From Paragordius varius (taxonomy: Eukaryota; Animalia; Nematomorpha), in NCBI GenBank assembly GCA_964247055.1, contig OZ176052.1, forward strand, positions 3,286,001 through 3,350,000: 64,000 nucleotides of DNA. Reading direction: 5' to 3'. The first letter of the stretch is position 1. Every line of letters begins with the position of its first letter. The translations under genes and the position numbers were made by a program. Under the pieces are notes generated by a model, which saw only the letters and a program-made list of their open reading frames with translations, had not been told where the DNA came from and ran no database searches. Of this stretch, positions 17,675-61,686 are shown one piece after another.

Positions 17675-18146
17675 TCTGGTACTAATTCCAATTTTGCCCC
17701 AAAACATTTACTTTTTTATTTGATGCAAATATTTTTTTATGTTATCTGTGGGATAAATTATATTGTGTTAAAGTAATTAAATAACTTTAGTTGTTTGTTT
17801 GTTTTGGATTAAAAGATTTTTATGGAGGTTTATCTATCTAAAAATCATATTAAATAGAATGTGCCGTGCAATATAATTTGACACTTCAGTTATTGCTGCT
17901 TTTAACATCTATATGTTAGAAAGTTAACAAGACAGCTCAAGAAAAATTTTAGCATATTTTATTTAAAATTGTTTTTTTTCAATCTAAAGCTATTCCTTAA
18001 TGGTTAAATATTGTTCTGAAATCAAATAATTTATGCGAACTCATCATTATTCACGAAGGAGTAGTATATAGATAATTAATAATTTAGTTAGATTTTCATT
18101 AATTTTATTTTTTTCCACTCATAATATTTTTTGCAAAACTGTGATA

Positions 18147-28526: not shown

Positions 28527-31464
28527 ATGAGATATTATTTCAAGGGTTCCCCCTTGTTTTTTGTACCATTATTGATGATGGTATTTCGGCTACCTAATTA
28601 TATATACGGTTTAAGAAATTTTCCTAAAACACACTTGATTGTATTTAAAGACATAAATATTGGTGCTTTATATGAAATCTATGATCGTAACTCAAGCCGT
28701 GGAGTTATGTGTAGCAATACTTTTCACGATTATTCCATTGTTAATGGGTTAAGCGTCCTCTACACCTTGAGTGAATGGAATAAAAATTTATTCGTGCCAA
28801 AATACAATATTAGCATTGGGGTTATCATGTTACCAACATGCCAAAAACAAGGGACATCACAGGTAATGAATATGTACTTTAATAAACTTTAATATACTTT
28901 TATATACCATTTACAGTTCACATTCACCCTTGAACAATTCAAATTGACCCTTAAACAATTTAAATTCACCCTAAAAATAAATTATGTGTTTTCGAAGAAC
29001 TAATATAATTCATTATTAATAAAAAATTTATCTTTAGGGCATATCAGTATTATTTTAATTTAAAACATTTTTAATTTTTAAAAATATATAAAAATATAGT
29101 TAATTTTTAAACTTAAAAAACACATTTAATTTTAGGGTGAATTTGAATCGTTCGAGGGTGAATTCAAATTGTTCAAGGGTAAATTTGAATTGTATATGAT
29201 ATATACGCAATCGTGGATTCGTTTTGTTTTTATTGTATTTCAAAAGTTTTATCCCAGATCTTTATATCGATCGATATGAAATGCTAATAAATTTATTAAA
29301 TTAATCAAAAAAAGTGATTCAGCATAAACTAAAGCAACAAAAATTGTTCTTTACAGCGCGTTAATATAGAGATTAAATCAAATTTTAAACAAAAAAATTT
29401 TATATTCTATTAGAACCGAATAAATTAGGTTCGCTATTTGGCAGCCTTGATTTTTAAAATTCTAGTCATTAAATAATTTTAAACCCAGCATTTTGAATAT
29501 TAGCAATCGGCCAAAATAAATTTTAGCAATCAAATATAGATATAAAAACTTATGCTTCCCAAATTTTTTATAGCTACAAAGCATACGACTTGGTAACACA
29601 CATCAAAGATTGATGTTGAGAGGCATAATAGGTCCCGTATCCACTTACGAATCTAGGATGGCGTCTCCCATTTTAGGATTCCATCGTATTCCTCATATAA
29701 GTCCCGAAGTCAATTCGGCCCAATTGAGAGGAAGAGTGTAAGAAATTAAATTTTATTTCTGACTTTTGTTCTTATTATGAGATAATTTGATATTTTTTTA
29801 TGATAGGTATGATCATCTTTTTACCATTTTGACAAGTCAAAAAATATATTTGGATGCTATCCTAAATCTTTTCGTCTATTTTCGATGGAATCAGTTTACA
29901 CTTATATACACGGAGGCTCCTTTTTACCAATGGTTTGTACATGAATTGCATCGTAAACTACCAAAATTACGGATTTGTATGTTAGATGTCATCATGGTAC
30001 CTTTTGAAGTCATTTTTACTGACACGTACAGTAAACGATCTGAAGCCATAGAATCTGCTTTTACGTCTTTAATGGAAAGGAATGATCAACAATTAGTTTT
30101 AATGCTTTGTTCTCCCAATCATGTGTTGTATAGTTTGGCCCTTCTAAAGGCTCTAAATCAACACTATGCAACCAAACTCATGTTTGTCGGTATTGACACT
30201 TGGCCATCAACATATAATTTGGTGAGACACAATCTGACAGATTATGCGGTAGGATCTATCATTATATACGATATAACGGTAGATACCTCGTTATTTCGTT
30301 CATGGCTAAAAAATGTGTCGAAAAGTAGTCATAACCTAATACAACATCCATGGATCACTCACCTTCAACAAAACTTAGCCAAGTTTGGAGAGAAGGCTGT
30401 GGAAGCAATAGTTGATGACCGAGTTTCAAATAATATTGATGCCACATCTGCCTTGTTATATGCCATTATTAATATCATTGAAATGGAATGTAAAAGATTT
30501 GTGAGCACCAACAAGCGCGAGTTATTAAAGTGTATCATGAAAGCTGATTTAAGGGCACATTTACTTAATGTTAGTTTTGTCGGATTGACGGGACCAATCG
30601 CTTTTCGAAAATCAGCTAATGTAAAAAATAACCATATCCTTAACTATGGAAATTATTTAGCTTTTGGTGTACAAAAGATTTATCATATGGAACGTGTGGC
30701 ATATGTTTTGGATACTGGTAAATTAACTCTTATACGCCCATTTATATGGCAAAACTATAAATTTTTCGTTCCTCAAGAGGCCCCATCGTTTCGTTGTAGT
30801 TCTCCTTGTAAACCATACGAACAGCCCATAACTGGAACTAAATTGTGTTGTTGGTCTTGTAGGGCGTGTGGCAGGCGCCAAATTTTTACACCAAATCATC
30901 TATTAGCCAATAACAGTTTTAATCCTTGCATGGTGTGTCCTACTTTCACATGGCCCGTTTTTAATCGTACCTATTGTCAACCATTACCTGTACGTAGATT
31001 AATATCTTTGAAGTGGTACCCCTTTTTTATATTTGCATCAGTGTTAGGTTTGATTTTAGCAACATTTCTTATCATTTACTACTGGTTCAAGGCGGGAAGC
31101 GACAAATTTCAATTCGAATATCGACCTATACTTTATGTCCAATATCTCGTCTCTATTTTAGGATTCATTGCCATCTTGTTACTTATTTCACCGAGAACAA
31201 ATAAACGCATGTGTGGAAGTGGAACATTTTTATATCTTGTATCCATAACAATTATATTTGGAATTTTGTTAGGCAAACAGTATATCATTCTACGCAAACA
31301 GCGTGCCAAAGGAAAATCTGCAAAATCTATTGAGAAAATGGGATTTTTACTAATAACCATTGTGGTGATTGTACAAGTAATTCACTTTTGTCTTTCCTTC
31401 CACAATTATAATAACAAAATTATAAAAATTTTCGATACCTTATATATTCACATATTGTTTTTAT

Positions 31465-31510
<46 letters not shown>

Positions 31511-32279
31511 CCCCTTGGGTTAGATTATTATGATTGGTGTCGATTATTCAAACGGTACTTCAGCTCATAGGATTGAAGTAATACCACAATCATTTACGTC
31601 TTTCCCCAAATCAGAAATGGTTGAAACTAAAGACACCACATCCATTCAAAACAACTTTTTAGGGAAAATGATTAGATCAAAATTTGCCAATGCCTTTAAT
31701 CCAGCTGCCTATGTGGAAGAATTTTGTTCGTCCTATTTGTGGCCAATAGGTTTGCTTACCATTGTGGTGATATTTCACATGATACTTATAATCATAATAC
31801 TTATACAAAGTGTAATTATATATCATACATTTTTCCTGCGTTACAAAGAAATAACGTTCCTTCAGATTCAAACAATCATTACAATAGCGGCATATGTAGT
31901 GGGCATAGTTTTATACTATATATGGACAGGTTTAAAAGCCCAAATCTGTATTCTCATGGTATTTTGCATCATACTTTTCGCGCAATTGTACTTTTGTTAC
32001 CAATTTATTATACGGGGGCGTAAACTCTCTACGTCAGGAAATTCCTCGCCGCGATCAGATGCAAGTACGCCCCAAAAAAGATTGTCTCCATCAGAAAACG
32101 AAACGAAAAAATATTCATTCGATAATAATAATAATAATTATAATAATCAACAAAATTTTGAAAAAAACGAGGTTAATCCGCCAAAAGACAACCATGAAAA
32201 TGTGGGACCCCCAAATGAAATGATACCAAACACAATTGAAAACCTAGAACAAAGAAAATCGATTATCAAAGATCAATGA
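28527..32279 (+). CDS. Class C GPCR paralog 1 (signal peptide, Venus flytrap, 9-Cys domain, 7TM), 941 aa
   Basis: Exons 28527-28862, 29574-29737, 29807-31376 and 31524-32279 total 2826 nt and are open. Motifs: DINIGALYEI, LPTC, RGIIGP, IPHIS, FRWN, FVGIDTW, CSSPC..CCWSCRAC..CMVCP..YC, seven hydrophobic helices, LLGKQYII in TM3 and YKEI before TM6. Confidence 0.92.
28914..29192. mobile_element. MITE with ~80-bp TIRs built from ~21-bp internal direct repeats, TA TSD (Tc1-like)
   Basis: TA|CAGTTCACATTCACCCTTGAACAATTCAAATTGACCCTTAAACAATTTAAATTCACCCT is inverted as AGGGTGAATTTGAATCGTTCGAGGGTGAATTCAAATTGTTCAAGGGTAAATTTGAATTG|TA. It lies in GPCR1 intron 1. Confidence 0.82.
31468..31507 (+). repeat. 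(AT)n microsatellite in the last intron of GPCR1
   Basis: About 40 nt of pure AT repeat, 15 nt upstream of the acceptor AG at 31522-31523. Confidence 0.95.
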
Positions 32280-33075
32280 GCAAAATTATAAATATCATGT
32301 TAAATATTTGAATCTTTTTTGGTTATCCCTTGTGTGACCTATTTTAGTTTTTGCATATAGTTATAACTGAAGTCAATAAATATACTGAATGGCTGTTATG
32401 TTAATGGATCTTTAAAAGTTTAATATATATTTATTTATATATATAACGCTATTTTTATCGGTAACAAATAGAAGACAGTGAACACAGTTTTTTAGTTTAT
32501 GTTCCGTTTAAAGATTTTACTTATCAGAAGTTGTAAAAAATGGTAAAATAAAATAAAACGGTGTTAATGGCAAGCATTACATTAATCTCTTAATATTGTT
32601 TAGAAAAACCAATATAATAATAATAATAATGACTAACATTTTAAATTAATCAAATACTGATTAGTATAAAATTATTGGAACTTATATATAACTTTTTAAA
32701 AAGAAATTAAGTTTATATTTAAATAGTTTTGCATCGCTATAATATTTGACTCTTTTATCAAAACTAGATGTATATTATGGGCTGTAACAAAATATAGAGC
32801 AATCATTTAGAGGTTATTTAAAAGAATTTATATTAGTGAAAAAGCAGCTTGTCACACCTGGTTTACAAAAAAATCATATGTTCTGTCCTATTAAAAGAGC
32901 CAAAATATATGAATAAATTATACTAAATTACTCATTTCTAAGGAGAATTTTTAATTGGTAAATTCAATTATAAAACCTTCTTCTGTATTGGATAAATAAC
33001 TTAGATATTTTAGATTTTTTAATTTTTAAAGTCTCAAATCATAGCTCCACAACACGATTGAAATGAACACAGATA

Positions 33076-35367
33076 TCTATATAATTATGAAAATGGAAAA
33101 TGCTGGCTTTGTAATCTGTTTCCGAAAAACCGGTATACCCATTCAAAAAACGTCGAAAAAATTTAATCATTAATGAATGCCCCGACTATAGCTTCGCCCT
33201 TTTACTGAATTAGGCCCTTAGTTCGGGCCCACCCCGTGTAAAAAACAGTTTTTTTTGAAAACAGTATGTCCACAGAAATCGTGTCTTTGAGACAATTTTC
33301 CGGAAAATGTGTTGGACCATTTGATTTCAAATATGATTTTTTAACTTATTTTTGATTGCGCCGAACATAGTCGACCCGCTCCCCTCTTAAAAAGCCTTTT
33401 TTTTTAAAACCAAGTCCACAAAAATAATTTTTTCAATCTATTTTTCGCCCAAGGTTTGAGACCATATAAATTCAATAAGGTATTCCCGGTTAAAAGGCAA
33501 AAATTTTAGTCGTGCGCTTTTTATATTGGCTTCTGGGTATGGAGATACCCGCTAAAAACTACCCCGTCATATCGAAATAGCTTGCCTTTGGGACTAAGTT
33601 CTAGAAAACTCAGGTCATATGAGTTTAAAAGTTGCTTCAAATATTACCCATAACAAGGCAAAATTTAGGTAGTGGGGTTTTTTAAAATAAGCCGTTAATT
33701 AGGCCCTTCAGGGCCTGATAAATGCGCCACCATAGAATTATTTGTTTTGAGGCAATTTTACCAAAAACTATGAAATTATATGAATTAATCAGATTCCAAT
33801 CATTCTCCCTAAAATGCCAAAAATTTCGCTTTTGTATCAGCCTCTGGGTAGGGAGCTACTGGCCTAAAACTGCGCCACCATATCGAAATTGCGTTGTTTA
33901 GGAGTTAATTTCAGAAAACTTATCAGGTCACTGAAATATTATTCGTAAAAGGCAAAAATTTAAGTAGAGCGGTTTTTAAAAATTTGCCGTTAATTAGGCC
34001 CTTTACGCCCTAAAAAATCGGCTATCGTTGAACTATTATTTAATTTGAAGCCATTCTTCCCAAAACTATTGATCGGGTTTTCCCCTATAAAGGCAAAATT
34101 GTTTTATTGAACGTCCTTTTTATATTGGCCTCAGGGTGGAGGGCTATCTGCCTACAACTGCGCCACCATATCGTTACAGCGTCACTTTGTAGACAAGTTT
34201 TTGAAAACATATTAGGACATATGAGTTCAATAAGGGCTTGAAATATTACCGGTAAAATGCAAAAATTTAGTTAGAGCGGCTATTAAATTACCCCTTAATT
34301 AAACCGTTGCCCTAAAGCATGCGCCACCATAGAATGATTTTTGGTTTCGAGGCAATTACGAAAATCGCATAGCACATGGAGTCAATCATGATTCCAGGTA
34401 TTACCCAAATTGAGGCAAAAATTTTAATCGGGCGTTTTTTTGTTGTGCCCTGGTTGGGGGCTACCCGCCTAAAACTGCATCACCATATCGATACATTATG
34501 CCTTTGGAGCCGAATTTTAGAAATCCTATGAGACTAATAGGTACACATGGAATCCATGATAATTCCAGATATTCGCCATATAAAGTCTAAAATTTTGCCC
34601 AACGCTTTTTTTATACCTGCCCCTGGGCAAGAAGCTATCTGCTAAAAACTGCGCCATTATATAGAAATTCCGTTGTTTTGGAGTTAAACAGAAAACTTAT
34701 GAAGCCATATGACCTCATTAAGCTTGAAATATTACCCGTAACTAGGTAAAAATAAAGGTCGGGCGTTTTTTATTAGCCAATAATTTGGGGTCTTTGTGCC
34801 CTTAAAAGACACCATCATATGACTATTATTTAGTGTTGAGGTATTTTTTCGAATAACTCATGAGACGTCAAAGATGATTCCAAATATTTGCTCTATAAAA
34901 GCAAAGATTTTAACTCAGCGCTTTTTCCATATAGGTCTATGGGTAGGGGTCTACCGATTTAAAACTGAGACGCCATACAAAAATGGCGTGGTTTTGGATA
35001 TAAGAAGCCATACGAGTTCAGTTCAACACATTTCTGGGGAATTTGTATAATATCATTTTTTCCTTTGAAAAGAGACCACAAATGATTTACTTTTTATATC
35101 CCTTGATCCCAATTGTGTGAACACAATTAATAAAACTTTTAACCATGATTTCGTAAAACGAAAATCTTAAATTTAATATGGGATAGTTAAATATGGTCGA
35201 TTTCAAGCAAACAATATTTGAGTCTATGCAAAACCCGTAAAAGAATATTAAAGACATCCTTTTTAATAAATATGTTTTTTTATTTCCATTATCTCTATTT
35301 ATTGCAAATTATTAAGAATAATTATCGGTGAAACTACGTCACAGCGAAGCGTGACAGGACCAGCTAG
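33076..35367 (+). mobile_element. Non-autonomous Helitron (~2.3 kb)
   Basis: The 5' end is A|TCTATATAATTATGAAAATGG. The 3' end has the hairpin GTCAC-A-GCGAAGC-GTGAC (35338-35355) followed by CTAG|T (35364-35368). It is inserted between A and T with no TSD, and no Rep/helicase ORF is visible. Confidence 0.8.
33440..35000 (+). repeat. Tandem array of ~150-170-bp monomers inside the Helitron
   Basis: The motif (c)taaaa(a)ctgcgccaccata recurs near 33555, 33724, 33872, 34020, 34160, 34321, 34476, 34650, 34800 and 34960, each followed by catatgag..aatatt.ccc.taaaaggcaaaaattt variants. Confidence 0.88.
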
Positions 35368-35544
35368 TTAAACCAATAAATATCAATAATTTTTAAGCTT
35401 TCCTAACTTAAATATTTTTTTAACCATAATATACATCTATTTGCCTGTTGTATTGAAAAAAAATATAAGGAAAAAATGGCAGTGAAAAAGTTTGAGTTGA
35501 GGTTTTACAATTTTAATATTTAAGGATTTTTTATATAAGTCACC

Positions 35545-36325
35545 TTAAGCTAAAATAACATTTTTTATTTTTTTATTCGTAATCTGGTTCATGAGAGTGT
35601 AATAAATTTGCAGTTTTATTTTGAAAACTCGCATGGGCGGGAATTACAAAGTAAAAAATTAATAGAAAATTGGATTAAGAAATAGTGGAATATCAACCGC
35701 CGTAGAAACCCAGTAAAAATATTATTTCGTTTTAGACAAACTTGTTAGTGAGATTTGTACGGATTGTTGGTTCATAATCCACCACCTGTAAATCCTATTT
35801 TGTATTATTTATATACTTTGTAAATCCCACTCATGTAAGATTCCAAAATAAAACAGCTAATTTATTATACACTCATAAACCAGATGACAAAAAAATGAAA
35901 ATTTGAAAAACAATATTTTTTAGTTTTATATATTTATAATTTTTTTCACAAAATATGAATGTTAAGAGTTTAAAAGTTATTTTATCTAATAAAAAATTAT
36001 TTAAATATAGTTCCATAAAATTTTTTGTGCATTAAGTATGTTTAAGGAAAAACACGATTTTTTGATCTGAGTTTTAATAAAACCCCTAACTATATGTTTT
36101 TTTAGGCTATTTATAAATTGTAAATATTGATAAAAGTATAATAAGTCTTAACATCTCAAGTTTTACCATTATTTTTTTGATTATGCTTAAAACTAATATT
36201 TTCTCTTTTTGCCCAATTTTTTTCTCTCATTATTTCAAAGGTAGTCTACAAAATTTTTGCCGCAAATGAATTTGCTGATTAGCTATTTTATGAAAAATTT
36301 TTGCTAAAAATATTTTTGCACAAAC
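35545..36325. repeat. Fold-back repeat plus ~600-bp segment also found at 45531-46158
   Basis: ATCTGGTTCATGAGAGTGTAATAAATTTGCAGTTTTATTTTGAAAACTCGCATG (~35580-35635) is inverted at ~35830-35886. 35728-36325 is colinear with 45531-46158 (e.g. CATGTAAGATTCCAAAATAAAACAG, TATACACTCATAAACCAGATGAC). Confidence 0.78.
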
Positions 36326-36623
36326 GTTCATATATCAATTGCACATTTTAGCTTTTAATAAGGATGACTTTAATGGGACTCATTAGGAAATAATATTTTA
36401 TGTGAGCTCTAAACCAACAAAGGAAACAATTGTATAGCTCATTATCATTAAAAATACCAAAATTAATTATTAATTATTTATTATTTCTATGAATTAATGT
36501 ATATTATTTTAAAGTAGTACAATATAACTTATCTAATATAATTGTATTTCTAAAGGTTATTTTAAAGGTTAATTTTATGGATTTTGGAATTATAATGATG
36601 GCAATCAATTTTCCTAACAAACT

Positions 36624-39600
36624 ATGTTCGTTCTCCTTAAGCAAACCATGAATAAGAATATTGTATCTATAACTTTTGTGTTATTCATATCCAACAACCT
36701 AATATCGACAAGTAAATTACAAGATTTTCCAATCACTCAATTAACCGGGCTGAAAGATGTCAATATTGGGGCTTTATATGAAATATACCATAGAAGTCCA
36801 AATCGAAACAGTATGTGTAGTAATTCTTTCAATGAGATAACGATAGTCAATGCCCTAAGTGTAATATACACAATATCGGTGTGGAATCAAAGATTATTTC
36901 GACCCAAATATAACATAAGTGTTGGTTATATCATATTACCTACTTGTAGGAATCCTGGAACAGCACAGGTTTTATCGTTGTTACATTAAGTATATAATTG
37001 AAGTATATTATACTGTTTAAAACAGGGCTGCCCAACACAAATGGTATTTTATTTCAAAAAAATCTCGGCGAGCCGCATTGATAAAATATAGCAAATGGAT
37101 ACATCAATAAATATTTTATTATATTTCAATAATGGGACTGTCAAAATTACAATCATCAGATATATATTAATTATTTAAATAGTTTATTCCGTTGGCAATA
37201 TCTTTACGGTTTTCGTTTTTAAAAATTTTGAATGATAATTTTACCTTAAAGATTTTAATGAAATCCATTTTAATCACAAATATGTGGCATATATAAATAT
37301 TCCATCTTATAAAATAACGCTTTACTGAATAATCAATGGTGTTATTAAACTATACAGATATTATTATAAAAAAATAATATATATCAATAATATTAATTTA
37401 ATTTTACTGAGATATTTTCTAAACTAAAAATGTTGTATTCATTTTTGCGCGGGCCGTTTTTTTGAAGAAGTGCGTGTTGGAAACGCCTGGTTAAAACAGG
37501 CGGGCATTTACTATTGATAATTCGGCCCAGTTATCAAGCGCTAAAATTCCTAATAATAAAATTTCACTTTTATAAAAAAAGGCAAACTAATGATTGATTT
37601 TACAATATATGTATACTTTATACCAGGGGTGCCTAACTTACAGCCGACGAGCCGCATACAGTTTTCCAAAAAATTTTGAAAAAAGCAAATAAATCCAATA
37701 ATTTATAATGTTAGAAATTTTTTCGTAAAAATTACAATTATACTGAAATATTATTTTTTGATAAAAATTATTAAGAATTACATATTTCGTTTATCATCAC
37801 CATTAATTGTTTAGTAAGGGCTATTTTAAGGCTTTGAATATTTAGATATACCACCTATTACCCTTATTTTTTCAATGCAGTCCGCCGGATTTTTAAAAAT
37901 GCGGTCCACGAAGGTTTGTGTGTCGGACACTCCTGCTTTAAGCGTTATAATACTGTATTATTAATCTTAAATGGTGATTTTAGAAATAGCCTTTACCATA
38001 ACACAAACTTTTGTACTAAATTTTCTAACAACCAATAAGGTCTAAAAGCAAATTACTTATTTATTTAGGCATGTTAAACAATTCAATATATACGCTCTTT
38101 ATAATTATACAACCAACGGTTAAAGTCATAACTGAAATATAATGATCCTAAAACTATAAAATACTTAAGAGCTTAAAATTTTTTGTTTTTCCGGTTTAAA
38201 AACCTCTATATAAGCTTACGAAAAGAACCATAACTGGAACCGGATGTATTTTTGGAAGGAAAATAGTTTTTTAGGTAGAAACCGCGATTCCGGTTTTCAT
38301 CCCTGAAACATTTACAGAAAATAAACAATTTGTCAAAGGAAATATATCATTGCAATATTATTTTGATAATCCTATTAACAAAATAAATTCCCAAGATTTT
38401 ATTTTTAACCAGATTCAAAGTATTATGTTGAATCGGATGAAAGGCAAGGTTAATCTGCGTGGTATTATTGGGCCTACATCAAGTTACGAAAGTCGAGTTA
38501 TATCACCATATCTGGGGTTTCACGCCATTCCACACATCAGTCCAGAAGTGAATTCTGCCACGCTGGTCGGAAAAGGGTATGTCATTTTTGTTTTAAGTTT
38601 GAATATGCTAAATGAAAATTTTTTTATCATAAAAGCATGCATGCATTGGGGCTTATTTGGATGTGAAATGCACATGTTGCCTTAATTTCCTGACTTAAAC
38701 TTTTCCTTTGTAATATTATATTTTTTGTTTTAATTGTTAAACCAGATTTAGGGCCATGTGATCAATTCACATAATATAAGCCAAGCGAAGTCGACTTAAA
38801 TGACTACCATATTTTCCTAATATTTTTTGTTTTTAACCTTTTATTAGGAAAAAAATGATGGATCAAACAATCTCTAAGTCCACTTATTGATAATTTTTCC
38901 GAAAAAACCGTTTCTAAAATTAACTCCTAAATCTAGATCCGATTTTATCCCTTACGACAAAAAAATATCTTTTTCTTGTGTTTGCGCCTTTGAAATGGTT
39001 TTTAATAATATTTAATATTATAAATATTTAATATTATTCTAGTTTCGAATACCTGTTTACCATTATAAAGAATCAAAAATTTTATCTGCATGCAATCCTC
39101 GATTTAATGAATTATTTCAATTGGAACGAAGTGACAATAATTTACTCGGAATTCTCGTTTTATCAATGGTTTGTAAAACAGCTAAAACAAGCCAGCCTTG
39201 TCCATAAAATATGTATTTTGGATACTATAATGATACCATTAAACACTGTTTTAAGTGATCCGCTTAGCCGAGAACCCAATACCGAGAGAAAGTTTACTAA
39301 ACTGCTAGGGAGGAAAGGACCTCAGCTTGTGTTACTACTTTGTTCTATTGACCACAGTTTACATGCCCTAAAGATCCTTCAACAGTTAAACGTGCTGTTT
39401 GATACTCCTTTATTGTTTGTAGGCATTGATACATGGCCCTCCACCTACATTCTTAACCATCATAAGTTAACCGATTTCGTCCTCGGTTCAATAATTATTT
39501 ACGATATAACAGCAAACAATAATTTGTTTGGAGGTTGGTTGAAAAATATTTCATCCCTAAATTATGGTGAAAGAGGTCGGCATCCTTGGTTATCTCACCT

Positions 39601-42600
39601 GCACCATGTATATAAAATGGATTACAGAAGATGGTATTTTTTAGTAGATGAGCGCATATCTCCAAACATTGATGCAACAACCGCCATACTTTATGCTATA
39701 GAAAATATTATCACCAAACAATGTTTACCCACCATTCATTCAGTTAATAATAAAACACAATTAATCGAATGTGTTATGGAGTCAAATTTACGAGACGCCA
39801 TTTTAAATGTCAGTTTTTATGGATTGACGGGTAGAATTAGTTTTAAAGGTGGTGCGAAGGAAATGGCGAATACGAGTGATAAACATACACTTAATTATGG
39901 GGTATATCTGGAAATTGGCAAACAAAAACTTTATAAGTTAAAAAAAGTTGGTCAAATCCCTGAACAAGGAAACATTACAATCACCGATAATTTATTTTGG
40001 AATAATATTAGTTTTACCAATGCGGTGGGAGCTCCTGCATTCAGATGTTCTAGACCTTGCCGGGCAAACGAACTCAAAGTTACAGGAACCAAAGTATTTC
40101 ATATTGATGATTAATGTATTTTACAAATGCATTTGTTATATTAAATTACATTATGGTATCAATTATGCCCAAATTGTATTAGTGTAAATATAAGGTTAAT
40201 GTGCTTAGAATTATCTTTTCTGCTAAACTTTTATTTTTAACATTTTATAACTTCTATATTCAAAGATTAGTAGTTAGTTATCAAATAGTCCTAATAATTT
40301 AGTGTATAATTACAAATTAAGATGAAAAATCATTTAATTTTTTTTAAATCAATAAAATAATTGGCGTCAACATAAAAACGCTGTAAATAAAAATTTACTT
40401 AATCTCATGGAATTACAACCAGGGCTTCGAACCGGAGCCGGAATCACATGGATCCTTAACCCGGTTCCGGTTCTAATCATCAGGAACAAGTTCCCTTTTG
40501 GTTTCACCTCCAAAATGAGTGGTTCCCAAATGGTTTTATTTTTTTAAAAAAATATACTGTTTAAAATATAACTTTAGATTGATTGCATAATAGCTTGTTT
40601 CTAGTTTTCCATCGAAATGAGATGACCACCATAATTTTAAAATTAATCATTAAAATATTATTTTTTAAAATAAAATAATCATATGATATTATTTTTTAAT
40701 GGAATACCATGTTAACAATTTTTGGAATATTTTACCCTTAACACCTGAAGAGAATCATAGATATAATTAATTGCTTTAAGATATGGATTGGGAACATTTA
40801 CCTTATTAATTAATGATTCTGGTAAAAAACCACAAACTTTAGCGCCCATAATCTATTACCCATAAAAATAATGAGCCACCCTAACCTCGGACCATGGGCC
40901 ACATGAGGCCCTTTCGATTTTTGGCCACAGTAAAAATAGTCAAATTTATCATGTAAGGTTCCATTAGTTGAAATACTATGGCTAAAAGTAACTTTCCACG
41001 CTATTATATTTTCAGATGTGAGAAATCTGATAACCAAATTACTTGTCGCAATCATTAACTCTAGTTAATACAGATACACCTATTACCTATCTTTGTACCT
41101 TACATTTAGCTATTTCATTTTTTATAAATTCTGTTTTGATTTACGATTTTTTATATTTTGGTTTATATTATAATAAAAATGTTATATGAATACTATTTAA
41201 TAAAACAGGAACCGAAATGAAACTGGTTTCAAATATATAGAACCGGTTCCGGAACTAATTCTAAGAAAAGCAGGCCAATTCCAACCGTCCAGGTACCAAA
41301 CCGGTTCTGGTTTAATTTTTCGAACCTATTCGAAGCCCTTTATAACATATTATATCCAGTTTATGATGAGTGTAAATTTTGGAATAATTAACGGAAAGTT
41401 TTTAAACAAAATAACAAAAAAAGTTTTGGAAAGTCAAAAATCTCACTACACCCATATTTGTTAGATTATAATATTTTTGAATAAATTTTTGTGCTGGCTT
41501 TCAAGAGCTTAAATATAGCCAAATCTTTGATTTTTGGTATAATTAATATTATCCGAATTGCTATGAATTAATTTATATCCTGTAAATTTATTATCCGAAA
41601 TATAAAATAATATAACTGATATTTTAAATAATTACATTAATGTTAGTTGGTTAACATTAGAAGTTTTTTACCACCAATGTGTTAATGGTATGTTATTTAA
41701 ATATTTTGTAGGTATGTTGTTGGACTTGCATAACTTGTAGAAAGCGTCAAATATTTACGCCTGTCGATCAATTAGCTAATCATAGTCTCCGACCATGTTT
41801 GGATTGCCCAAAGTATACATGGCCCCTGTACAATCGATCAAAATGTCAAAATTTGCCTATTCAACACATCGATAATCTCACTATTTATCCCTTCTTAGTA
41901 TTTGTTGGTACAATAGGTTTATTAAGCGCTTTAATTCTCATTATATCGTATGTGGTGAGTCAATCAAAAATTGAATACCAATTCGAGTATCGTCCACTTT
42001 TGTACGCTATGTATGCGAGTATTTTGTTAGGGTTCATCGGATATTTTCTCCTTATATCGAATCGACCGAATCCGAAAATTTGTGGGACTGCAACATTTTT
42101 GTATTCAAACTCAATTACAATGATACTAAGCGTTATCATTGCAAAACAATATATAATCTTGCGCAAGCAAAAAAATAAAGGCAAATCCACTAAAATTCAA
42201 AAGATGGCTGTTACAATATTTTCGGTTATCGTTGTGTTACAGGTATAATTTATGTATCTAATTAATTAATGATTGGCAATTCTATGTATATTGTGCTATA
42301 TTAAGGGTTATAAATATATTTTTCTCTAATTCGATTATTTTTGTATGAATCACCAGCCCTCAGACTCTGATAATTTTTAGTGCCACTTTGCTTATAAGGA
42401 AAATCTGATTTTAATCAGTAAACTGTTTCGGAAGTTTATCAATATATTCATGGTAAAAAATGTCAAAAAATTTTCATATCTATAGATTATTTAATACATA
42501 TTATATAAGTTTGTGTTTCAAATAAGTTTTGATATTTAAGTTAAGCATCTGACTTGCGAAAATCATAACCATAAATTAGTTAATATCTGGTGAATATTTG

Positions 42601-44279
42601 TTTATGACGGTTCAATGTAAAAAAATTTTCTAGAAAATTAGCGCCGCTTAATTTTTACACACTAGCTTTAATTTTATATTAAAAGCATATGATTAACCCG
42701 TTCGGTACTTGAGATGGAGAGATAAAATATAAGATTTAAGTAAAATTTGTCCAACGAAATAAAAGTCTATGCGTAATATAATGATTTTAAAGTGAAGTTA
42801 ACAAATTAATCGCCTAAATAAACAGATTTAACCCCGTCACAGGACTATTTACTTGTTGTCTTATTTTTTATTTGTAAAATTATTTGTTTAAATTTTGATT
42901 GCCTCGATTGTACCTTCGTTTTACGTGTATATGGTTCGTATTTTTATGGCTGGTTCGTAATATAGAATACCTATCAAATAATTAATTTTTATACTGCCTA
43001 TTAAAGTCAATTATACAAACACAAAGCATGTCAGAACACTAACATTGCAACAAACTGTTTTTAAAGTTTTAACGGAAAAATATAATTGTTTAATAACATT
43101 TTATTAAAAAATTAGAATATCTGTTGTTTAAGATATAGATCAGAAAACAATGAGACCGAACGTAAAACTATAAGTTTTGTTCAAACTAATATTTATATAC
43201 ATCTAGAACAACTAGAGAAAAATGTCCGGGAACCGTTAACAAAAACGTTTTTTTCAATCCCTGTTTATAAAAATATTACTCCTAATAATATCTATTGATT
43301 TAACTATGAATTGTTGCATCTATCTACTTTGAAAAAAAACAAAAATATTTGGTTAACAAGCATATGAATTTACTTTATTAAAAAATATTAATATTTTATT
43401 ATCCTGAATTATTATAAATTTGATAATAATATTTTTATATTTGTTTTTTATTTAAAAAAAGTGTAGGTTCAAATTCAATAACTCCCAATTAAAAGAAAAT
43501 TTGTAGGCACAGTAAACCAAAAATTGTGCCAACAAAATGGTTTTTAGTTAGCATCAATGAATATGCGTTGACATATTTTTAACCAACAATTATCAAACTA
43601 AGGATTTAAGTTATAATATGACTAACTTTATTATCCGCAAAAACATTTCTAGATTTTGTTGACAATCGTTGATTTCCACAACGGTACATCCACAGACAGG
43701 GTTGAATATATACCAAAGTCATTCATAGAATATGATGAAAGGACTGAAACTGTTCCGATGTTGACACCAAAACGTAATAAAGGTTTTAAAATGTGGAGGG
43801 CCAAATATCATAATATTGAAGCTCTTCCTCATATTGAGGAATACTGTTTACCTTATTTATGGCCTATGGATTTACTAAAGTTTTCTATATTATTTCACAT
43901 GAGCCTTATACTATTGCTTGTAATACAAGGTGTATCTATGTACCAAATCTTCTACCTTAATTATAGGGAAATTAATAGGTTACAAACACAAACCATTATA
44001 AATTGCATGGCTTATATACTAGGCATCGTGCTTTATTTCATGTGGACAGGATTCAGAGCCCACATAGCTATTCTATTAGTGTTTGCTACTATTTTGTTTA
44101 CACAATTATATTTTAACTTCAAAGCTCCCTTGCCATACTCGAAAAATCGGACAGGTCAAAGTTCTATTGCTATGCCTGGAACATTGGCTAATTCAAGTGG
44201 TGGTCAACAATCACAACGCAAAGTATCTCCTGTCACGAAAACTTTTAACGCAATTACAATTGATAAAAAATCGGAATAA
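36624..44279 (+). CDS. Class C GPCR paralog 2, 905 aa
   Basis: Exons 36624-36968, 38413-38576, 39043-40093, 41712-42242 and 43653-44279 total 2718 nt and are open. Same motifs as paralog 1 (DVNIGALYEI, RGIIGPTSSYES, FVGIDTW, CSRPC, CCWTCITC, IIAKQYII, YREI). Confidence 0.92.
37023..37488. mobile_element. hAT-type MITE in GPCR2 intron 1
   Basis: TIRs CAGGGCTGCCCAACAC / GTGTTGGAAACGCCTG, subterminal CGAGCCGCA and similar AT-rich flanks (GTTTAAAA / GTTAAAAC). Confidence 0.65.
37624..37935. mobile_element. hAT-type MITE in GPCR2 intron 1
   Basis: TIRs CAGGGGTGCCTAAC / GTCGGACACTCCTG, 8-bp TSD CTTTATAC / CTTTAAGC (6 of 8 match) and subterminal CGAGCCGCA. Confidence 0.75.
38220..38305 (-). mobile_element. 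Single hAT terminus (CAGGGATGAAAACCGG on the minus strand)
   Basis: TTTCATCCCTG at 38295-38305 with adjacent AACCGG-type subterminal motifs. No convincing partner end was found. Confidence 0.45.
40420..41340. mobile_element. hAT-type MITE (~920 bp) in the paralog-2-specific intron
   Basis: TIRs CAGGGCTTCGAA / TTCGAAGCCCT(T), multiple subterminal AACCGG/CCGGTT motifs at both ends, and TSD-like TTACAACC / TTATAACA. Confidence 0.7.
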
Positions 44280-45530
44280 AATACCAAAAATATAATGTAT
44301 AACAAAGTTACATTACCATAGAGTGACAAATTTTTGGGTCTATTTTGTATACTTTTCCATGCTATTATATGAGATGATTTTTGAATAAAAAATGGGAGAA
44401 TATTCAAGTGAAATGAATTCAAAAGAAACAAAATGCGCCAAACAGCTGATTGTTAGTTTGTGGCTATAACGCTTTTAAGCAGTAGGTAAAACAAAGAAAA
44501 AATGTTTTAATATATGTAGCTTTAATGGTAAAACCATCGCAATAGCTTCGGCCAAAACTTATTTAAGTTGTGGAAAATTTGAGTTTCAGTATACTTATAA
44601 TCCTAACATTTAAAATTTTTCAAACTCTTATGCTTTTATGTCAAAAATTAAAGTTTTCAATGCATATAAATGTACTATAATTTTAACATTTTTACTTGCG
44701 TAAGGTCAAAATAATAGGTTGTGGTCCATTTTGGTTCTTAGTTATTGATCTTATGATCGCATATTTTCCCGGATTATAAATCCTCGTTACTTTTTTCCAA
44801 TAAAATCTAGTCACTCACCTGTTGGACCCTGAAATTTAACATACTATGATTAATGCTTAAAATGATTATGATTTAATGAAAATTTGTGTATTATTATTAT
44901 AATTTATAATAAATGTATTATGTCGTATACAATTTATTATTGCTAAGATTTAACAAAAAAGGATTGCTGTTTACTCATCAATATACACAGGCAGTGAATA
45001 TTTTGGAGCGTATTTAAAATTATCCCGAAAATAATCATCAGACTCTCATTGTGCCACTTTTGGGGCTTACGACTCATTCAAGCTTTCATTTTTGTGGTGG
45101 TTGCCCATGAATCGCAAAATTGGCTCTCTATAGATAAAATTTTGATAACCTAAAATATGGTGCTATGCATAATAGTAAAATATATATTTACAAAGTAAAG
45201 CAATATTTATAATTAATATACTAGCTCAAATCCCTAATTTTTTGGGCCCCACTCGAATGGTCTAGTTTTTTAGAAAAATAAATTAAAATGTGGAAAATTC
45301 ACGATAACACTTTTTATGCAAAATTGTAAAAATAAAATAAACTTGTAAAAAATATCTTTATTTTGCTTAAAAGTTGAATATTAACGAAATTTTGTTAAAG
45401 TATACATTATCTATGAAGCCACGGTATTTTGTTTGTTTTGATTTTGAATAATAGACTATCGGAGTGAAGCGCTTAAAATTAAATATATTTTAAAATAGTC
45501 ATTAAAATGTTTTTTTTGAACAAACAGGTC

Positions 45531-46158
45531 TGTTTTTAGACAAATTAATATTTTTGTTGAGATTTGTACGGATTATTGGTTGATATTGCACTACTTTTAA
45601 ATGCTATTTTGCATAAATTCTTTATAATTTCCTATCATGTAAGATTCCAAAATAAAACAGTATAAATTTTTTATACACTCATAAACCAGATGACACAAAA
45701 ATGAAAAAATAAAAAACAATATTTTTTGGTTTTATTTTGATATATAAGTTTTTTTACTGAATAAAATATGAATGTTAAGATTTTAATAGTGAGTTTAGCT
45801 AGTAAATAATTAAAAAAAATTATTTTAATATAGTTTCATGAAAAAATTTTGTCTTTTAAGTGTGTTAAATGAAAAACGCCATCTTTTGAGCTAAGATTTT
45901 ATAGAAACCCTAACTATATAATTTTAGGCTATTTATATATTGAAAATATCTCCTAAAATGAAAACCATAATATCTCAAATTTTATCATTATTTTTTGAAA
46001 TATCCTTATAACCTTAATTTTCCCTTTTGCCTGATTTCGATTTTCTCTCAATATTTCAAAACTAGGTCGTAAACAAATAAAATTTTTACGGCAAATGAAT
46101 ACGCTGGTCATGAGCTATCTCATGAAAAAAAATTATTTCGTTATTTTTTTGCACACAA
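45531..46158. repeat. Second copy of the ~600-bp segment, upstream of GPCR3
   Basis: Colinear with 35728-36325 and in the same orientation. Confidence 0.8.
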
Positions 46159-46825
46159 AGTATCTGAATAATTTAGATATTTTTACTATAAAATAGCGTA
46201 ATTAAATATGTTAACTTTATTTATTACTTAAAATAAATATATTTTTTTTAAATTAATTATTTCTGTCACCATCATATTTTATAAAAGAAATTAAATTTAT
46301 CCATATGATATATTATAACATAAATAATTTGATTAACATAATCCAATTGTTAATAATAATACAATAATCCTAATTTGGATGAGCTATAAGTGAATTTTTG
46401 AATGCAAATATTAACCTTCTCTCCAGGAGGGGAAAATGACGTATTTTTTATTTCTTTAAAAAATTAATTGGAAGTTGTAATTATAAACGGAAATCAGATT
46501 CATTAAAAAAATAATGAACAGAATACAATTAAAAAGGGGTAATAAATAAAAAGGAGTCCCAATTATATTAATAATTATCTATTTATACAATAATACAATA
46601 TTGATTTTTTTTCGTCTCTAAAAATTTATCCCGTTGTATTAAAAAATTTAAATTTAATTATTTTCTAATTTTATTTTCTTTTTTTAAAAATTATATTTTT
46701 CTTTTCCTAATTATGAGAATTCTATTGTAAAGACTTGTCATCATAAAAATATTTATCGGCCCAATTTAGATACATATACGCTAACAATTTTTAAACCCTG
46801 CAAAATACATCCAATTACAATAATA

Positions 46826-49800
46826 ATGCTTTGGCTCACACCCTTATTGCATATTTTATTTTTATTCGGTTTACCATACAAAAAATCTTTGGTGAGTGCT
46901 CATAAGTTAGTAGAATTTCCTTTAACCCAATTAGTTCGTTTGGGTGAAATTAATATTGGGGCTTTGTATGAAATTTTTGAACGGAACCCAAATCGACCCC
47001 ATATGTGTAGCAATGTTTACAATGACTATACCATAGTTAATGCCTTGAGTGTCCCCTACACGCTGAGTGTTTGGAATGAAAAACTGTTTCGACCCGAATA
47101 CAATGTTAGTTTGGGTTTTATCATACTACCAACATGTCGGAAACAAGCAACTGCCCAAGTTAATTTTTTTTCATATTGGGTTTTTTATGGTACGCTGGTT
47201 AATTTCTAGAACAAATGGCTAATTTCTCATACATTTTTATATAAAAATTTAAATTTTTATTTACATAAAAACCATTCTCCTTTTGCCACAAATTACAGTG
47301 TATAAGCATAACTTTTCATCATAAGGAAATTATACATTACATAGGTTCAAAGTATTATGTTCAGTCGCATGAAGGACCAAGTTAATCTGAGAGGTTTGAT
47401 TGGGCCAACATCCAGTTATGAAGGCGAGTTTATCTCAGAATATTTGGGTTTCCATAATATCCCACACATTAGTCCAGAAATAAATTCAGCTGCGTTGACA
47501 AATAAAAGGTTTATTTTGCTAATTTTTTTATATGAACCTTAAGTATATTGATAATTATTAAATTTTCTGATTAAAAGATTTGATATTATTTAACTGTTAA
47601 GTCATTCCGTTATTATGTGGAATAAATATAATTAAATATTTAAATGTGATCGGTGTGCTTTTGGAAAGAAAATTATTTAAATGTCTAACTAATCCCACAC
47701 AATCAATTAAATTGTTTAAACCAGCGGTTCTACCGAAAACGCCCCTAGTATTCTAATTTTTAATCCTATTTAAAATTAATAATTAATACATGTTTTCGCA
47801 ATCAATTTATAGATTCAATAGCTTATTTACCATAACAACAAACCAAAGGGTGTATTTAAATGCCATCATAAAACTGTTAATTCACTTTGAATGGAACGAG
47901 ATTACAGCTATTTACTCTGAGTTACCATTTTATCAATGGTTTATTCAGGAAATGAAAACTAGAATGCCAAAGTTAAAGATTTGCCTTGTCAATGCCATAT
48001 TGATTCCCTTTGAGGCTGGTTTGTCGGAACAACAAAAACTTCCGCAAGGCTGGGAAAATTCTAGCCAGATTGTAGAATTCGAAAACTTCTTGAGTCGAAA
48101 AAAGCCAACAATTGTCGTAATGTTATGCACAATCACCCAAAATATTTATACCTTTTTGGCCCTTCAACAAATTAATCTACGTTACAGGACACCCCTTTTA
48201 TTTATAGGGATTGATACTTGGCCCTCTAATTACAACCTTGTGTTCCATAATTTAAGCGATTTCCTCAGAGGGTCTATCGTAATATACGATATTATTACAT
48301 CAACCAACGATGATTATAAACAATGGTTAAGGAGACTTCTAACAACCAACAATACATTGAGGCATGAACCCTGGATAGCCAATCTGGAGAAAAATTTTAA
48401 TGCATTCAATGAAAACCTTAATGTTCTTCTAGACAATCGAATAGCCGTTAATATTGATGCCACTACAGGTTTAATGTATGCACTTGATAATATTATGAAA
48501 AAGTGCAAACTAATGTATAGAGCTGACAAAAAACTTTTCATTCAATGCATAAAAGAATCGAATTTATTACAAAGCATATTGAACGTTAGTTTTAGCGGAT
48601 TAAGTGGCAATATAAATTTTCGTGCGCAACGCGCACACAAGGAAGAATCATTTTTAAGTTATGACAATTATATCCCTGTTAAATTGAATCAATATAATTT
48701 GGTACAAATTGGACAATTTTACGATAGTCGTATCACGCTTCAAAAACCTTTTACTTGGTTTAACTATACTTTTTCGACACCAGCCGAAGCGCCGAAATTC
48801 AGTTGTTCTCCACCCTGTTTGCCAAACCAACAAAAAGTTTCAGGGAGTCGAGTTTGTTGTTGGGGTTGTAGATCATGTTCTGGGAGACGTCAAATATTTA
48901 CACCGCTAGATGAATTGGCTAATAACAGCTTTAATCCATGCATTACGTGCCCATCATTCATGTGGCCCGGGTATAATCATACGTATTGCCGTCCTTTACC
49001 CATTCAGCGAATGTCAAATCTTAGAATGTATCCTTTTCTTTTGTTTGTGGGCGTTGTAGGTCTTGTGCTGACACTATTTCTCATCTTCTTTTATTGGAAG
49101 AACCGAAATACGGCCAAATACCAATTCGAATATCGGCCGCTACTGTATACACAGTATTTGGCTATCTTGTTGGGTTTTATAGCTTTCATGTTACTTATAT
49201 CTAAGCGTACGACTTCAGCGGTATGTGGGAGTGGGCGATTTTTTTACCTCATGTCAACTACTTTAATCTTCAGTACTCTGCTAGCCAAACAATACATCAT
49301 CCTACGCAAACGGGCCAAAGGCAAATCCGTTAAATTTGTGGAAAAAAGGGGATTGATTTTGGTTTTCACAATATCTCTTATACAGGCAAGTTTTTTGAAT
49401 TTAATTTGTAAATTTAAATATATATATATAAAAGGTTTAATTAATAGATGAAGACAAAGGTGGGATAATTGTTTGATAAAATATTTTTATATTTATTACG
49501 CAATTATACATACACATAAAGAATATTTGATTTCGGAGTACATTTGAAATGGGAATCAAAAGTGGTTAAGATTTTTGAAATATACGAAATTAAATTAATC
49601 ATGCATTTAATTTTAGCGATAAAAGTTATGGTTGCATTTATTACTATGTATATTTTATCAAACGATAGCTAATATTAATCATCCTGGATTTCTCTTATGG
49701 TGTACCGTCAAACAAAGTAGAAATAATCCCTGAAACTTTGCAAAGCAATCAAAATCCGTCTGCTAAAAATGCGTCGGGCATAATCAGAAATTTGAAAGTA

Positions 49801-50280
49801 CAAAGATGGTGGACCGGCACTTCCGATATCAAGGGTCTAGCCCATGTGCAAGAATATTGTTCAGCATATCTACAATCTCGTAATTTATATAGTTTATCCA
49901 TCATGTTTCACATGTTGTTATTGGTTATTGTGCTGATACAAAGTGTCATCCTATACCAAAGATTTCTACATTTCAAGGAAATTAATAAGCTACAAATGCA
50001 AACACTAATCATCATTTTGGTTTATACGGTTGGCCTAATCTTTTACAATATTTGGTTTGGATTTAAAGCACACATATGCATACTGCTTGTGTTTGCGATA
50101 ATCCTATTCTCACAAATTTATTATGGCCTATTTGGACTTCAATTGCTAACTACGCATTCGCATTCCTCATCTAAACCCGGGATATCTGGCATGAATACAA
50201 AGAATCAAACAAATCAACTTTCTAAGAATTCTCAAGCACCACCCATTGATGATACAGATATTAGCGGAGTGCCTGGATAA
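46826..50280 (+). CDS. Class C GPCR paralog 3, 893 aa, last intron GC-AG
   Basis: Exons 46826-47158, 47345-47508, 47813-49385 and 49669-50280 total 2682 nt and are open. Motifs: EINIGALYEI, RGLIGPTSSYEG, FIGIDTW, CSPPC, CCWGCRSC, LLAKQYII, FKEI. The donor CAG|GCAAGT lies at the position of the GT donors of the paralogs. Confidence 0.92.
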
Positions 50281-55900: not shown

Positions 55901-57061
55901 TCCACGACATTGGCCTATGAATGTATATGGCATGGTAAAGATATACATTACAGTCGTCATCTAAGAGTCCTAGCAGGAGATGGGAGAGAATTGGCTTGCT
56001 TCTGTGAAAATACCGAAAACATGATACAAACGATAAGTATGGAGGAACCGGTGCATTTATTCAGATCAGCGCAATCGATCAAAATAATATTCCACGTAAA
56101 TCAAATGCAATGGCCAGAAAACAGTAAAACCATCAATTTTCAACTCAAATATAATTTTCAGCGTGTCACACAATGCAGTTTTAATGATATACATTACACG
56201 TTACAGGGTTTGGAGAGGGGTTCTTTAAATTTTATCCACAAGGTATCACGCCTGATTCCACCGAAACCTACTGCAGAACCAGCTTTAAATTATTCCCTAA
56301 ACATAAAATCCAATTACAATCTTCGTTTAAGTCAGGAAACAAATCAGACAAATAATATGTCATCTAATATGATTGATGATGGAATGGAATCAATAGTCTA
56401 TAATTATTCAGCTTGCATTTGGACATTTAAGGTTGTACATCCATTACATTTTCTCTATTTCAAAATCTTTTTGGGTGTTAACGAAGATTGTGTACAAGAA
56501 AAAGTTATGATTTACACATTGGGACAACCGAAACCGTATATAATACTATGTCAACCGAAGACAAGCAAATATCCGGACAAAATGATAGACTTTTTTTCTC
56601 AGGGTTGGTTTCAGTTAGATTCTATAGCCAATGCTATTCAACATTTTCAAACGGATCAGAACTTGGTCAATACATCATCCATGGTATTTGGAGATTTAAA
56701 TCATCACACGCATGAAACCACTTTTGATTCTATGAATTCGGTATTGGTAGAATTAATAATAAATAATGCACCCTTGGCTCCAACCTCTCCAAATCTCATC
56801 AAGACTCTTGGTTTAAAATGGTTAACTGTCATGAAAACCAAACAGCAATTAGATTTTGTCACCCAAAAATTCACGACCTTAACAAATATATCACTTGATA
56901 TAGATTTGAAAGGCCTTCATAAATTTGTTAAAGAAGAATGTAGCTTTGAATGCCCAGGGGCATGTATTGGCCCATTTATGTGTGATGGGGTCTTTGATTG
57001 CCCTGGTTACTATGATAATCGTACGTTTGATGAACGCCATTGCCAAACATTCAAAAATTAA
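52997..57061 (+). CDS. Extracellular multi-CUB-domain protein with C-terminal LDL-receptor class A-like module, ~1006 aa
   Basis: Exons 53461-53724, 54254-55577 and 55690-57061 are phase-consistent. A putative signal-peptide exon 52997-53057 (MLSEILLPVFLTARPLSICF) is less certain. About five CUB-like repeats are visible (e.g. CRVQSPGWPGTYLRNIACKY..DRIEIYDG..LCG; GILISP..LTCQYEI), plus the LDLa-like CPGACIGPFMCDGVFDCP..DERHC before the TAA. Confidence 0.8.
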
Positions 57062-61671: not shown

Positions 61672-61685
61672 CGTTTTGGCCACCA
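61672..61685 (-). promoter_or_regulatory. Primer-binding site (PBS)
   Basis: TGGTGGCCAAAACG begins 1 nt after the 5' LTR end (..TGTCA-G-TGG). The cognate tRNA was not identified. Confidence 0.6.
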
Positions 61686-61686
61686 C

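Follow-up and report, generated by a model that had tools for sequence, protein, structure and literature searches.

A tandem cluster of divergent class C G protein-coupled receptor genes in the horsehair worm Paragordius varius

Three large, similar genes stand in tandem on one strand of a Paragordius varius contig, and the question they raise is whether they belong to a receptor family of the horsehair worms' own and, if so, what such a family may sense. The window (the whole stretch of DNA that was analysed, 64 kb, C3:3286001-3350000 of the 110-Mb, 44-contig assembly) is AT-rich, with 25-35% G+C. A first-pass annotation made from its letters described the trio, here named G1, G2 and G3, as same-strand paralogs of 941, 905 and 893 aa with open frames, encoding G protein-coupled receptors (GPCRs) of class C with a Venus-flytrap domain, a Cys-rich domain and seven transmembrane helices (7TM); hand-built gene models reproduce these lengths and frames exactly. 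The answer favoured here, with a probability of roughly 0.55, is that the trio are functional, anciently duplicated members of a hairworm class C subfamily that most likely senses external or host-derived chemical cues.

Splice junctions of G1-G3 were read by hand and the joined frames were checked by script. Database searches and folding of window sequences were carried out exon by exon, while the joined models served to check lengths and stops, to build alignments and trees and to compare synonymous with non-synonymous change. The gene models are as follows, with a slash marking each splice boundary.

28527-32279, forward strand: G1, predicted class C GPCR of 941 aa in four exons; open joined frame with one terminal stop.
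28527-28862, forward strand: G1 exon 1, encoding the signal peptide and the beginning of Venus-flytrap lobe 1; ATG at 28527, donor CAG/GTAATG.
29574-29737, forward strand: G1 exon 2 (164 nt), pocket motifs GPxS(S/T) and ISPEVNS as aligned to metabotropic glutamate receptors (mGluRs); acceptor ATAG/, donor GT/GTAAG.
29807-31376, forward strand: G1 exon 3, remaining flytrap, Cys-rich domain and transmembrane helices TM1-TM4; Pfam ANF_receptor, NCD3G and 7tm_3, donor CAA/GTAATT.
31524-32279, forward strand: G1 exon 4, extracellular loop 2 (~65 aa), TM5-TM7, low-complexity tail and stop, from alignments and hydropathy peaks; acceptor TTAG/ATT.
36624-44279, forward strand: G2, predicted class C GPCR of 905 aa in five exons; open joined frame with one terminal stop, Pfam matches.
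36624-36968, forward strand: G2 exon 1; donor CAG/GTTTTA.
38413-38576, forward strand: G2 exon 2 (164 nt); acceptor CCAG/, donor G/GTATGT.
39043-40093, forward strand: G2 exon 3, flytrap plus the initial third of the Cys-rich domain; ANF_receptor, donor AAA/GTATTT.
41712-42242, forward strand: G2 exon 4, CCWxC part of the Cys-rich domain and TM1-TM4; 7tm_3, acceptor TGTAG/GTA, donor CAG/GTATAA.
43653-44279, forward strand: G2 exon 5, extracellular loop 2, TM5-TM7, tail and stop; acceptor TCTAG/ATT.
46826-50280, forward strand: G3, predicted class C GPCR of 893 aa in four exons; open joined frame with one terminal stop, Pfam matches.
46826-47158, forward strand: G3 exon 1; donor CAA/GTTAAT.
47345-47508, forward strand: G3 exon 2 (164 nt); acceptor ATAG/, donor G/GTTTAT.
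47813-49385, forward strand: G3 exon 3, flytrap, Cys-rich domain and TM1-TM4; acceptor TATAG/A, GC donor CAG/GCAAGT.
49669-50280, forward strand: G3 exon 4, extracellular loop 2, TM5-TM7, tail and stop; acceptor GATAG/CTA.

The frame of G3 exon 4 is open 5′ of its first listed start codon and aligns with the last exons of G1 and G2. All introns are GT-AG except G3 intron 3 (49386-49668), a GC-AG intron with the classic donor CAG/GCAAGT whose equivalent is GT-AG in G1 and G2, and G2 alone carries an additional 1,618-nt intron within the Cys-rich domain. The introns of G1 measure 711, 69 and 147 nt, those of G2 1444, 466, 1618 and 1410 nt, and those of G3 186, 304 and 283 nt; the intergenic spacers are 4.3 kb and 2.5 kb. 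Exon 2, which had been called identical in the three genes, is the same in length (164 nt) and phase (start 0, end 2) but not in sequence; a 164-nt exon 2 is also present in four paralogues elsewhere in the genome (C3:1.07 Mb, C3:3.267 Mb, C3:3.276 Mb and C8:1.09 Mb). Pairwise protein identity within the trio is 46-48%, compared with 21-23% to other class C receptors, in agreement with the earlier statement that the three resemble each other far more than they resemble known receptors. Searching the 64-kb window with the G1-G3 models (tblastn) revealed no further fragments of the family. Within G1 intron 1 lies an inverted pair of 21-bp tandem repeats with three copies each (28913-28976 and 29134-29193); the two arrays are mutually reverse-complementary and may represent a hairpin or an insert resembling a miniature inverted-repeat transposable element.

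Each of G1-G3 consists of a signal peptide, a Venus flytrap, a nine-cysteine domain and seven transmembrane helices. In the large exons Pfam recognises ANF_receptor, NCD3G and 7tm_3, bearing out the layout first proposed. ANF_receptor matches exceed the cut-off in G1, G2 and G3 (E 1e-12, 1.5e-11 and 2.7e-14, respectively), and 7tm_3, covering TM1-4 only, scores 46.2 bits in G3, 33.3 in G2 and 26.5 in G1 against a cut-off of 33.5. NCD3G lies below its cut-off of 38.9 in all three (23.8-23.9 bits), and the nine-cysteine domain is therefore called from its cysteine pattern and fold: each of the nine cysteines aligns with an mGluR counterpart, and an insert of 7-8 aa is specific to the family. The TM5-7 exons of G1-G3 gave no Pfam match when searched alone; the last exon aligns along its length with P0155, a full-length orthologue from the hairworm Gordionus, which itself matches ANF_receptor at 1e-30 and 7tm_3 at 56 bits over profile positions 10-242 of 251. 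Hydropathy plots show seven hydrophobic peaks in G1, while the TM3 stretch of G2 and G3 falls under the 1.6 cut-off.

Structure prediction points in the same direction. An AlphaFold2 model of P0155, built from a 42-row alignment that included the window exons, has seven TM helices (pLDDT 86.4, pTM 0.69) and matches full-length mGlu2/4/5/8 and CaSR with E 1e-41 to 1e-36 and TM-scores of 0.67-0.76. G3 exon 3 folded alone gave a mediocre model (pLDDT 71.5) whose top Foldseek matches are mGluRs (E 1e-12), locally rather than globally, as expected for a partial protein. In phmmer searches of the PDB the same exon has its best matches in mGluR6/7/4/1/8/5 (E 1e-20 to 1e-15), followed by CaSR (5e-10) and T1R2 (1e-5), while exons 1 and 2 searched alone against the PDB returned no meaningful matches.

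The divergence among the three genes is old. Synonymous differences are saturated, with a proportion of synonymous differences (pS) of 0.75-0.88, and the domain-by-domain dN/dS that had been suggested as a check is therefore not estimable as a ratio; the proportion of non-synonymous differences (pN) and pS were used instead, and pN is lower in the folded domains than in the tail. It is 0.26-0.36 in the flytrap, Cys-rich and TM domains, 0.42-0.47 in extracellular loop 2 and 0.60-0.67 in the C-terminal tail. With pN/pS at 0.36-0.41, TM5-7 is constrained to the same degree as the flytrap. Some 900 open codons and conserved splice phases despite this saturation, combined with constrained folds, indicate that G1-G3 are maintained genes, and constitute strong evidence for functional genes under purifying selection.

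Six-frame searches of the genome, in which some paralogues were covered only in part, identified a divergent family of ~15 loci, with contig C3 carrying 12, supplying the genome-wide paralog count called for earlier. One paralogue outside the cluster, at C3:1.07 Mb, is 47-49% identical to G1-G3. Two further members lie 9-19 kb before the window, at C3:3267003-3269068 on the forward strand (L039) and C3:3275977-3277635 on the reverse strand (L007), and are 30-32% identical to G3. The tandem arrangement noted in the first-pass annotation is thus confirmed, although the trio is in fact the end of a five-gene cluster. In a distant paralogue (L010, C3:9795178-9796713) the Cys-rich domain closes with an in-frame TAA (CLALP-stop-KIIS); the locus might be a pseudogene or contain a very short intron that went unrecognised. 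The genome also holds conventional mGluR-type genes on contig C1: L013 (C1:8313374-8314084, ~8.31 Mb) matches human mGluR3 with E 2e-103, and L014 (C1:4496245-4496916, ~4.50 Mb) matches human mGluR2 with E 3e-57.

To find relatives, a HMMER profile was made from 13 large exons of the P. varius family and searched against 1.84 billion representative proteins. Six single-receptor matches stand far above the rest (E 1e-146 to 1e-66), all from Gordionus sp. m RMFG-2023, and below them follows a plateau of general class C receptors at ~200 bits; two fused-array Polypterus models labelled CASR and the 2,802-aa Logan protein P0010, in the same score range, were left out. P0070, the long branch next in proximity, comes from Gordionus as well. 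In RefSeq the Gordionus members are labelled 'metabotropic glutamate receptor 8-like', 'GPRC6A-like' or 'uncharacterized', and these names reflect similarity, not orthology. The joined G1-G3 models are 33-37% identical to the Gordionus proteins over nearly the full length. Word-based searching is nearly blind to this family: G3 exon 3 retrieved only two weak V2R matches, the 13-row alignment retrieved none, and P0155 retrieved only Gordionus proteins and fish mGluRs.

Phylogenetic analysis with metazoan class C GPCRs, also proposed at the outset, places the hairworm sequences in a clade of their own. Support for this clade is 99 (SH-like) in a 156-row FastTree analysis, 100 by the Shimodaira-Hasegawa approximate likelihood ratio test (SH-aLRT) in a quick 60-row IQ-TREE search under LG+C20+F+G4 with posterior mean site frequencies (PMSF), and 100 by ultrafast bootstrap (UFBoot, 1000 replicates) in a 60-row IQ-TREE analysis under LG+F+G4. 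The clade unites 13 P. varius rows with seven Gordionus rows in the IQ-TREE analyses, or eight in the FastTree analysis, and is split from spiralian, hemichordate, vertebrate V2R and arthropod sequences as well as from the mGluR-type sequences of P. varius itself. The latter group with mGluR-like proteins of Centruroides and Strigamia (UFBoot 100). Since the conventional mGluR-type genes at C1:8.31 Mb and C1:4.50 Mb sit elsewhere in the genome and fall in another well-supported clade, one-to-one orthology of the trio with mGluRs is ruled out and the claim of a lineage-restricted family is upheld. An artefact of AT-rich composition is likewise rejected, as the worm's own mGluRs are equally biased and yet group with those of arthropods.

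Within the hairworm clade, three P. varius loci pair with single Gordionus proteins (C5:12.47 Mb with P0157, C3:9.79 Mb with P0154 and C3:7.67 Mb with P0007), from which it follows that the family had already diversified in the common ancestor of both worms. G1, G2, G3 and the C3:1.07 Mb paralogue form a group with support of 99-100, sister to the Gordionus trio P0003, P0153 and P0155 (SH-aLRT 85, UFBoot 100); this topology implies that the G1-G3 branch was duplicated independently after the two lineages split. The family is so far restricted to horsehair worms (Nematomorpha), as judged from one other annotated hairworm proteome; the system first described as lineage-specific is therefore specific to hairworms and shared with Gordionus rather than unique to this genome. 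Among more distant matches, P0058 and P0138 (700-740 aa, from metagenome or SRA contigs) end immediately after TM4, covering 7tm_3 positions 1-131 and 4-138, at the point that coincides with the family's exon 3/4 intron site, and many other profile-search matches are of similar length. Both could be products of gene calling on a single exon of eukaryotic DNA, a hint that the intron position is old and shared.

What the receptors may bind was approached through the ligand pocket, using numbering from a HMMER alignment of P0155 to mGluR1 (7dge) extended to G1-G3 by L-INS-i; the numbering is considered valid because five landmark residues lie at a constant offset of 30 between P0155 and mGluR1. 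Arg78 of mGluR1, which we take to be a contact of the distal carboxylate of glutamate, corresponds to Asn in G1-G3 and to Lys in the Gordionus trio. In mGluR1, Ser165 contacts the ligand carboxylate, Thr188, Asp208, Tyr236 and Asp318 bind the amine, and Lys409 contacts the distal carboxylate (PMC2680970). The equivalents of these residues are Ser or Thr at 165, Asn at 188, Gln at 208 (nearly invariant across the family), Phe at 236 in G1-G3, Asp at 318 and Arg at 409, so that G1-G3 do not match the mGluR glutamate-site residue set. The pocket thus reads as an amino-acid-type pocket that has been re-tuned, with the changes conserved family-wide. The ligand probably carries a carboxylate, given that the equivalents of Ser165 and Asp318 are retained and that Arg takes the place of Lys409; because Thr188 is replaced by Asn, Asp208 by Gln and Arg78 by Asn, a standard alpha-amino acid is not predicted and glutamate is unlikely as the ligand. 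Core pocket residues are the same in G1, G2 and G3 and nearly so across the family, which argues against a split into binding and non-binding subunits of the GABA-B kind.

The transmembrane domain combines conserved and replaced elements. G1-G3 keep the cysteines of the disulfide between TM3 and extracellular loop 2, together with K3.50 and E6.35, the ionic lock; the roles of these elements in class C receptors are established, and the TM7 motif FxPKxY is highly conserved across the class (PMC8163086). Extracellular loop 2 is unusually long, at ~65 residues in G1-G3 compared with ~40 in P0155 and ~20 in mGluRs, with a conserved first part, (R/K)(I/V)E(V/Y/I)IP, and N-glycosylation sequons, and it forms a hairpin with an inserted helix in the P0155 model; extracellular loop 3 is ~17 residues shorter than its mGluR equivalent. 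Trp6.50 is replaced by Tyr and the TM6 FxP motif is lost in G1-G3, while FxPKxY is replaced in the family by (F/Y)xQ(L/I)(Y/F)(F/Y), with G1-G3 reading LF(A/T/S)Q(L/I)Y(F/Y) and lacking PK. Farther downstream, P0155 and the paralogues C8:1.09 Mb and C3:3.267 Mb carry an IPKI motif that is missing in G1-G3 and C3:1.07 Mb. These TM6/TM7 readings were taken from smaller alignments, the large automatic alignment being unreliable for the family rows; among other class C matches with complete TM6-7, ~80-87% retain W, P and K. As TM5-7 is constrained equally with the flytrap, the TM6/TM7 changes represent a conserved alternative and not decay.

From these features a working mechanism can be proposed. 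A small polar ligand, probably with a carboxylate and neither glutamate nor a standard alpha-amino acid, would bind in the flytrap cleft; in a dimer, the flytraps would close on the ligand, as in the established class C mechanism, and closure would be relayed through the Cys-rich domain and the long extracellular loop 2 to a 7TM domain with a kept disulfide and K3.50/E6.35 lock and with replaced Trp6.50 and FxPKxY. By analogy with other clustered, lineage-specific class C families, the cues sensed may, more speculatively, be external or host-derived; the tandem clustering, the independent duplication in two lineages and the phylum restriction would fit a sensory family. The combinatorial heterodimers imagined in the first-pass annotation are conceivable, as for any class C receptor, though nothing observed here points to them. 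Nematomorphs absorb nutrients although they lack a functional gut, alter the behaviour of their hosts and need to find water and mates, and a phylum-restricted class C family offers concrete candidates for how they read their host or surroundings. A more particular proposal, in which the receptors signal in a modified or non-canonical manner as sensors of host haemolymph nutrients or of host-exit timing cues in the gutless parasite, is considered unlikely.

Several points weigh against a role in sensing outside cues, or limit how far it can be carried. The family is modest (~15 genes) and old rather than the product of a recent burst, and its size, age and stable orthologue pairs would fit endogenous receptors about equally well. 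Its restriction to hairworms is judged against a single other annotated proteome, the high-confidence structure model is a prediction for the Gordionus orthologue P0155 and not for a window protein, the start codons and splice sites are predicted from genomic sequence, and with Trp6.50 and FxPKxY lost, G-protein coupling could be altered or absent. The trio might accordingly be divergent neuromodulator receptors for an endogenous transmitter or metabolite and not sensors of the environment or host. This is rather doubtful but not far-fetched: the closest solved relatives are the neuronal mGluRs, several members have one-to-one Gordionus orthologues, a stability commoner in physiological receptors than in fast-turnover chemoreceptors, and the core pocket is shared by all three genes and by nearly the whole family. 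However, the genome already holds conventional mGluR-type genes, the G1-G3 branch lies in tandem clusters and was duplicated independently in both hairworm lineages, and the family was not found outside hairworms in the searches made.

The altered switch residues raise a different prospect, in which the trio have no G-protein coupling of their own and act as modulatory or obligate partner subunits or through a non-canonical route, a strong form of the heterodimer idea in the first-pass annotation. The short lobe-1 loop, presumably the position of the inter-subunit disulfide cysteine in mGluRs, reads without a cysteine in G1-G3. The replacement of Trp6.50 by Tyr, the loss of TM6 FxP and TM7 FxPKxY, motifs of known importance (PMC8163086), and the missing IPKI in G1-G3 and the C3:1.07 Mb paralogue would all be expected under such a scheme. 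It is nevertheless quite improbable, given that K3.50, E6.35 and the TM3-loop disulfide are retained, that TM5-7 is constrained like the flytrap (pN/pS 0.36-0.41), and that all three share the same pocket with no division between binding and coupling, in a family that has no partner with canonical motifs. That the genes are unexpressed relics or mis-modelled pseudogenes, as the in-frame TAA in the distant paralogue at C3:9.79 Mb might suggest, is very improbable indeed, since ~900 codons remain open over four to five exons, splice phases are conserved despite saturated synonymous sites, and non-synonymous change amounts to only ~0.3 per site in the folded domains. The reading of G1-G3 as functional hairworm receptors for external or host-derived cues is preferred, and the family additionally provides a natural experiment on the question of which class C 'microswitch' residues are dispensable.

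Comparison with known systems helps to place the family. G1-G3 show the flytrap, nine-cysteine domain, 7TM and disulfide/ionic lock of class C GPCRs, and depart from the class at Trp6.50 and FxPKxY. Among solved structures, mGluR1-8 are the best match in sequence and fold, sharing the flytrap, nine-cysteine and 7TM architecture (E 1e-20 with G3 exon 3 and 3e-36 with P0155; full-length TM-score up to 0.76) as well as the Ser165 and Asp318 equivalents, the TM3-loop disulfide, K3.50 and E6.35; they differ in their clade, at 21-23% identity, and the hairworm proteins have a changed pocket, a long loop 2, a short loop 3 and lost switch residues. V2R/OlfC and T1R receptors likewise combine class C architecture with lineage-restricted expansion in tandem clusters, but the hairworm family is far smaller (~15 genes), a rabbit V2R (P0001) falls in the other half of the tree, and the obligate heterodimers of T1Rs are not indicated here. 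GABA-B receptors differ in that the hairworm trio has a Cys-rich domain and shares one set of pocket and TM motifs among G1-G3, without asymmetric subunits.

Further parallels are found among invertebrate receptors. Drosophila mangetout/DmXR-type orphans keep a partial alpha-amino-acid signature and lack the residues that bind the distal carboxylate of glutamate; set beside the hairworm family by description only, they show a similar, partly kept flytrap signature. The arthropod mGluR-like proteins of Centruroides and Strigamia lack Arg78, as do G1-G3, but group with the C1:4.50 Mb gene and retain PSD, SDGW, Trp6.50 and FxPKxY. Unnamed, species-rich class C clades of Lottia, Owenia, Tubulanus and Ptychodera have the same three domains and lie on the ~200-bit plateau, but they form separate clades (SH-aLRT and UFBoot 100) with canonical TM6/TM7 motifs where complete. 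A literature search found no papers on nematomorph class C or chemosensory receptors or on receptor repertoires in the phylum. Lineage-specific class C families are common in invertebrates, and the hairworm family is an undescribed, phylum-restricted variant of this pattern.

Elsewhere in the window lie mobile elements and a few other coding features, as follows.

2198-5119, reverse strand: long interspersed nuclear element (LINE), with an APE endonuclease open reading frame at 4013-5119 and a reverse transcriptase open reading frame at 2198-3253 bearing a PHD/C1-like zinc finger.
6945-7436, forward strand: exon with a conserved C-terminal Rad21/Rec8 domain (Pfam E 6e-14).
18141-19115 and 21492-22301, forward strand, upstream of the cluster: open frames of 324 and 269 aa without a significant Pfam match.
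54205-57061, forward strand: two long open frames (458 and 412 aa), probably a single gene 3′ of G3, showing a CUB domain and a DUF7805 match too weak to reach the threshold.
59245-61716, reverse strand: pieces of a Ty3/gypsy-type long terminal repeat retroelement over separate frames, comprising a zinc knuckle, reverse transcriptase, RNase H and an integrase zinc-binding domain.

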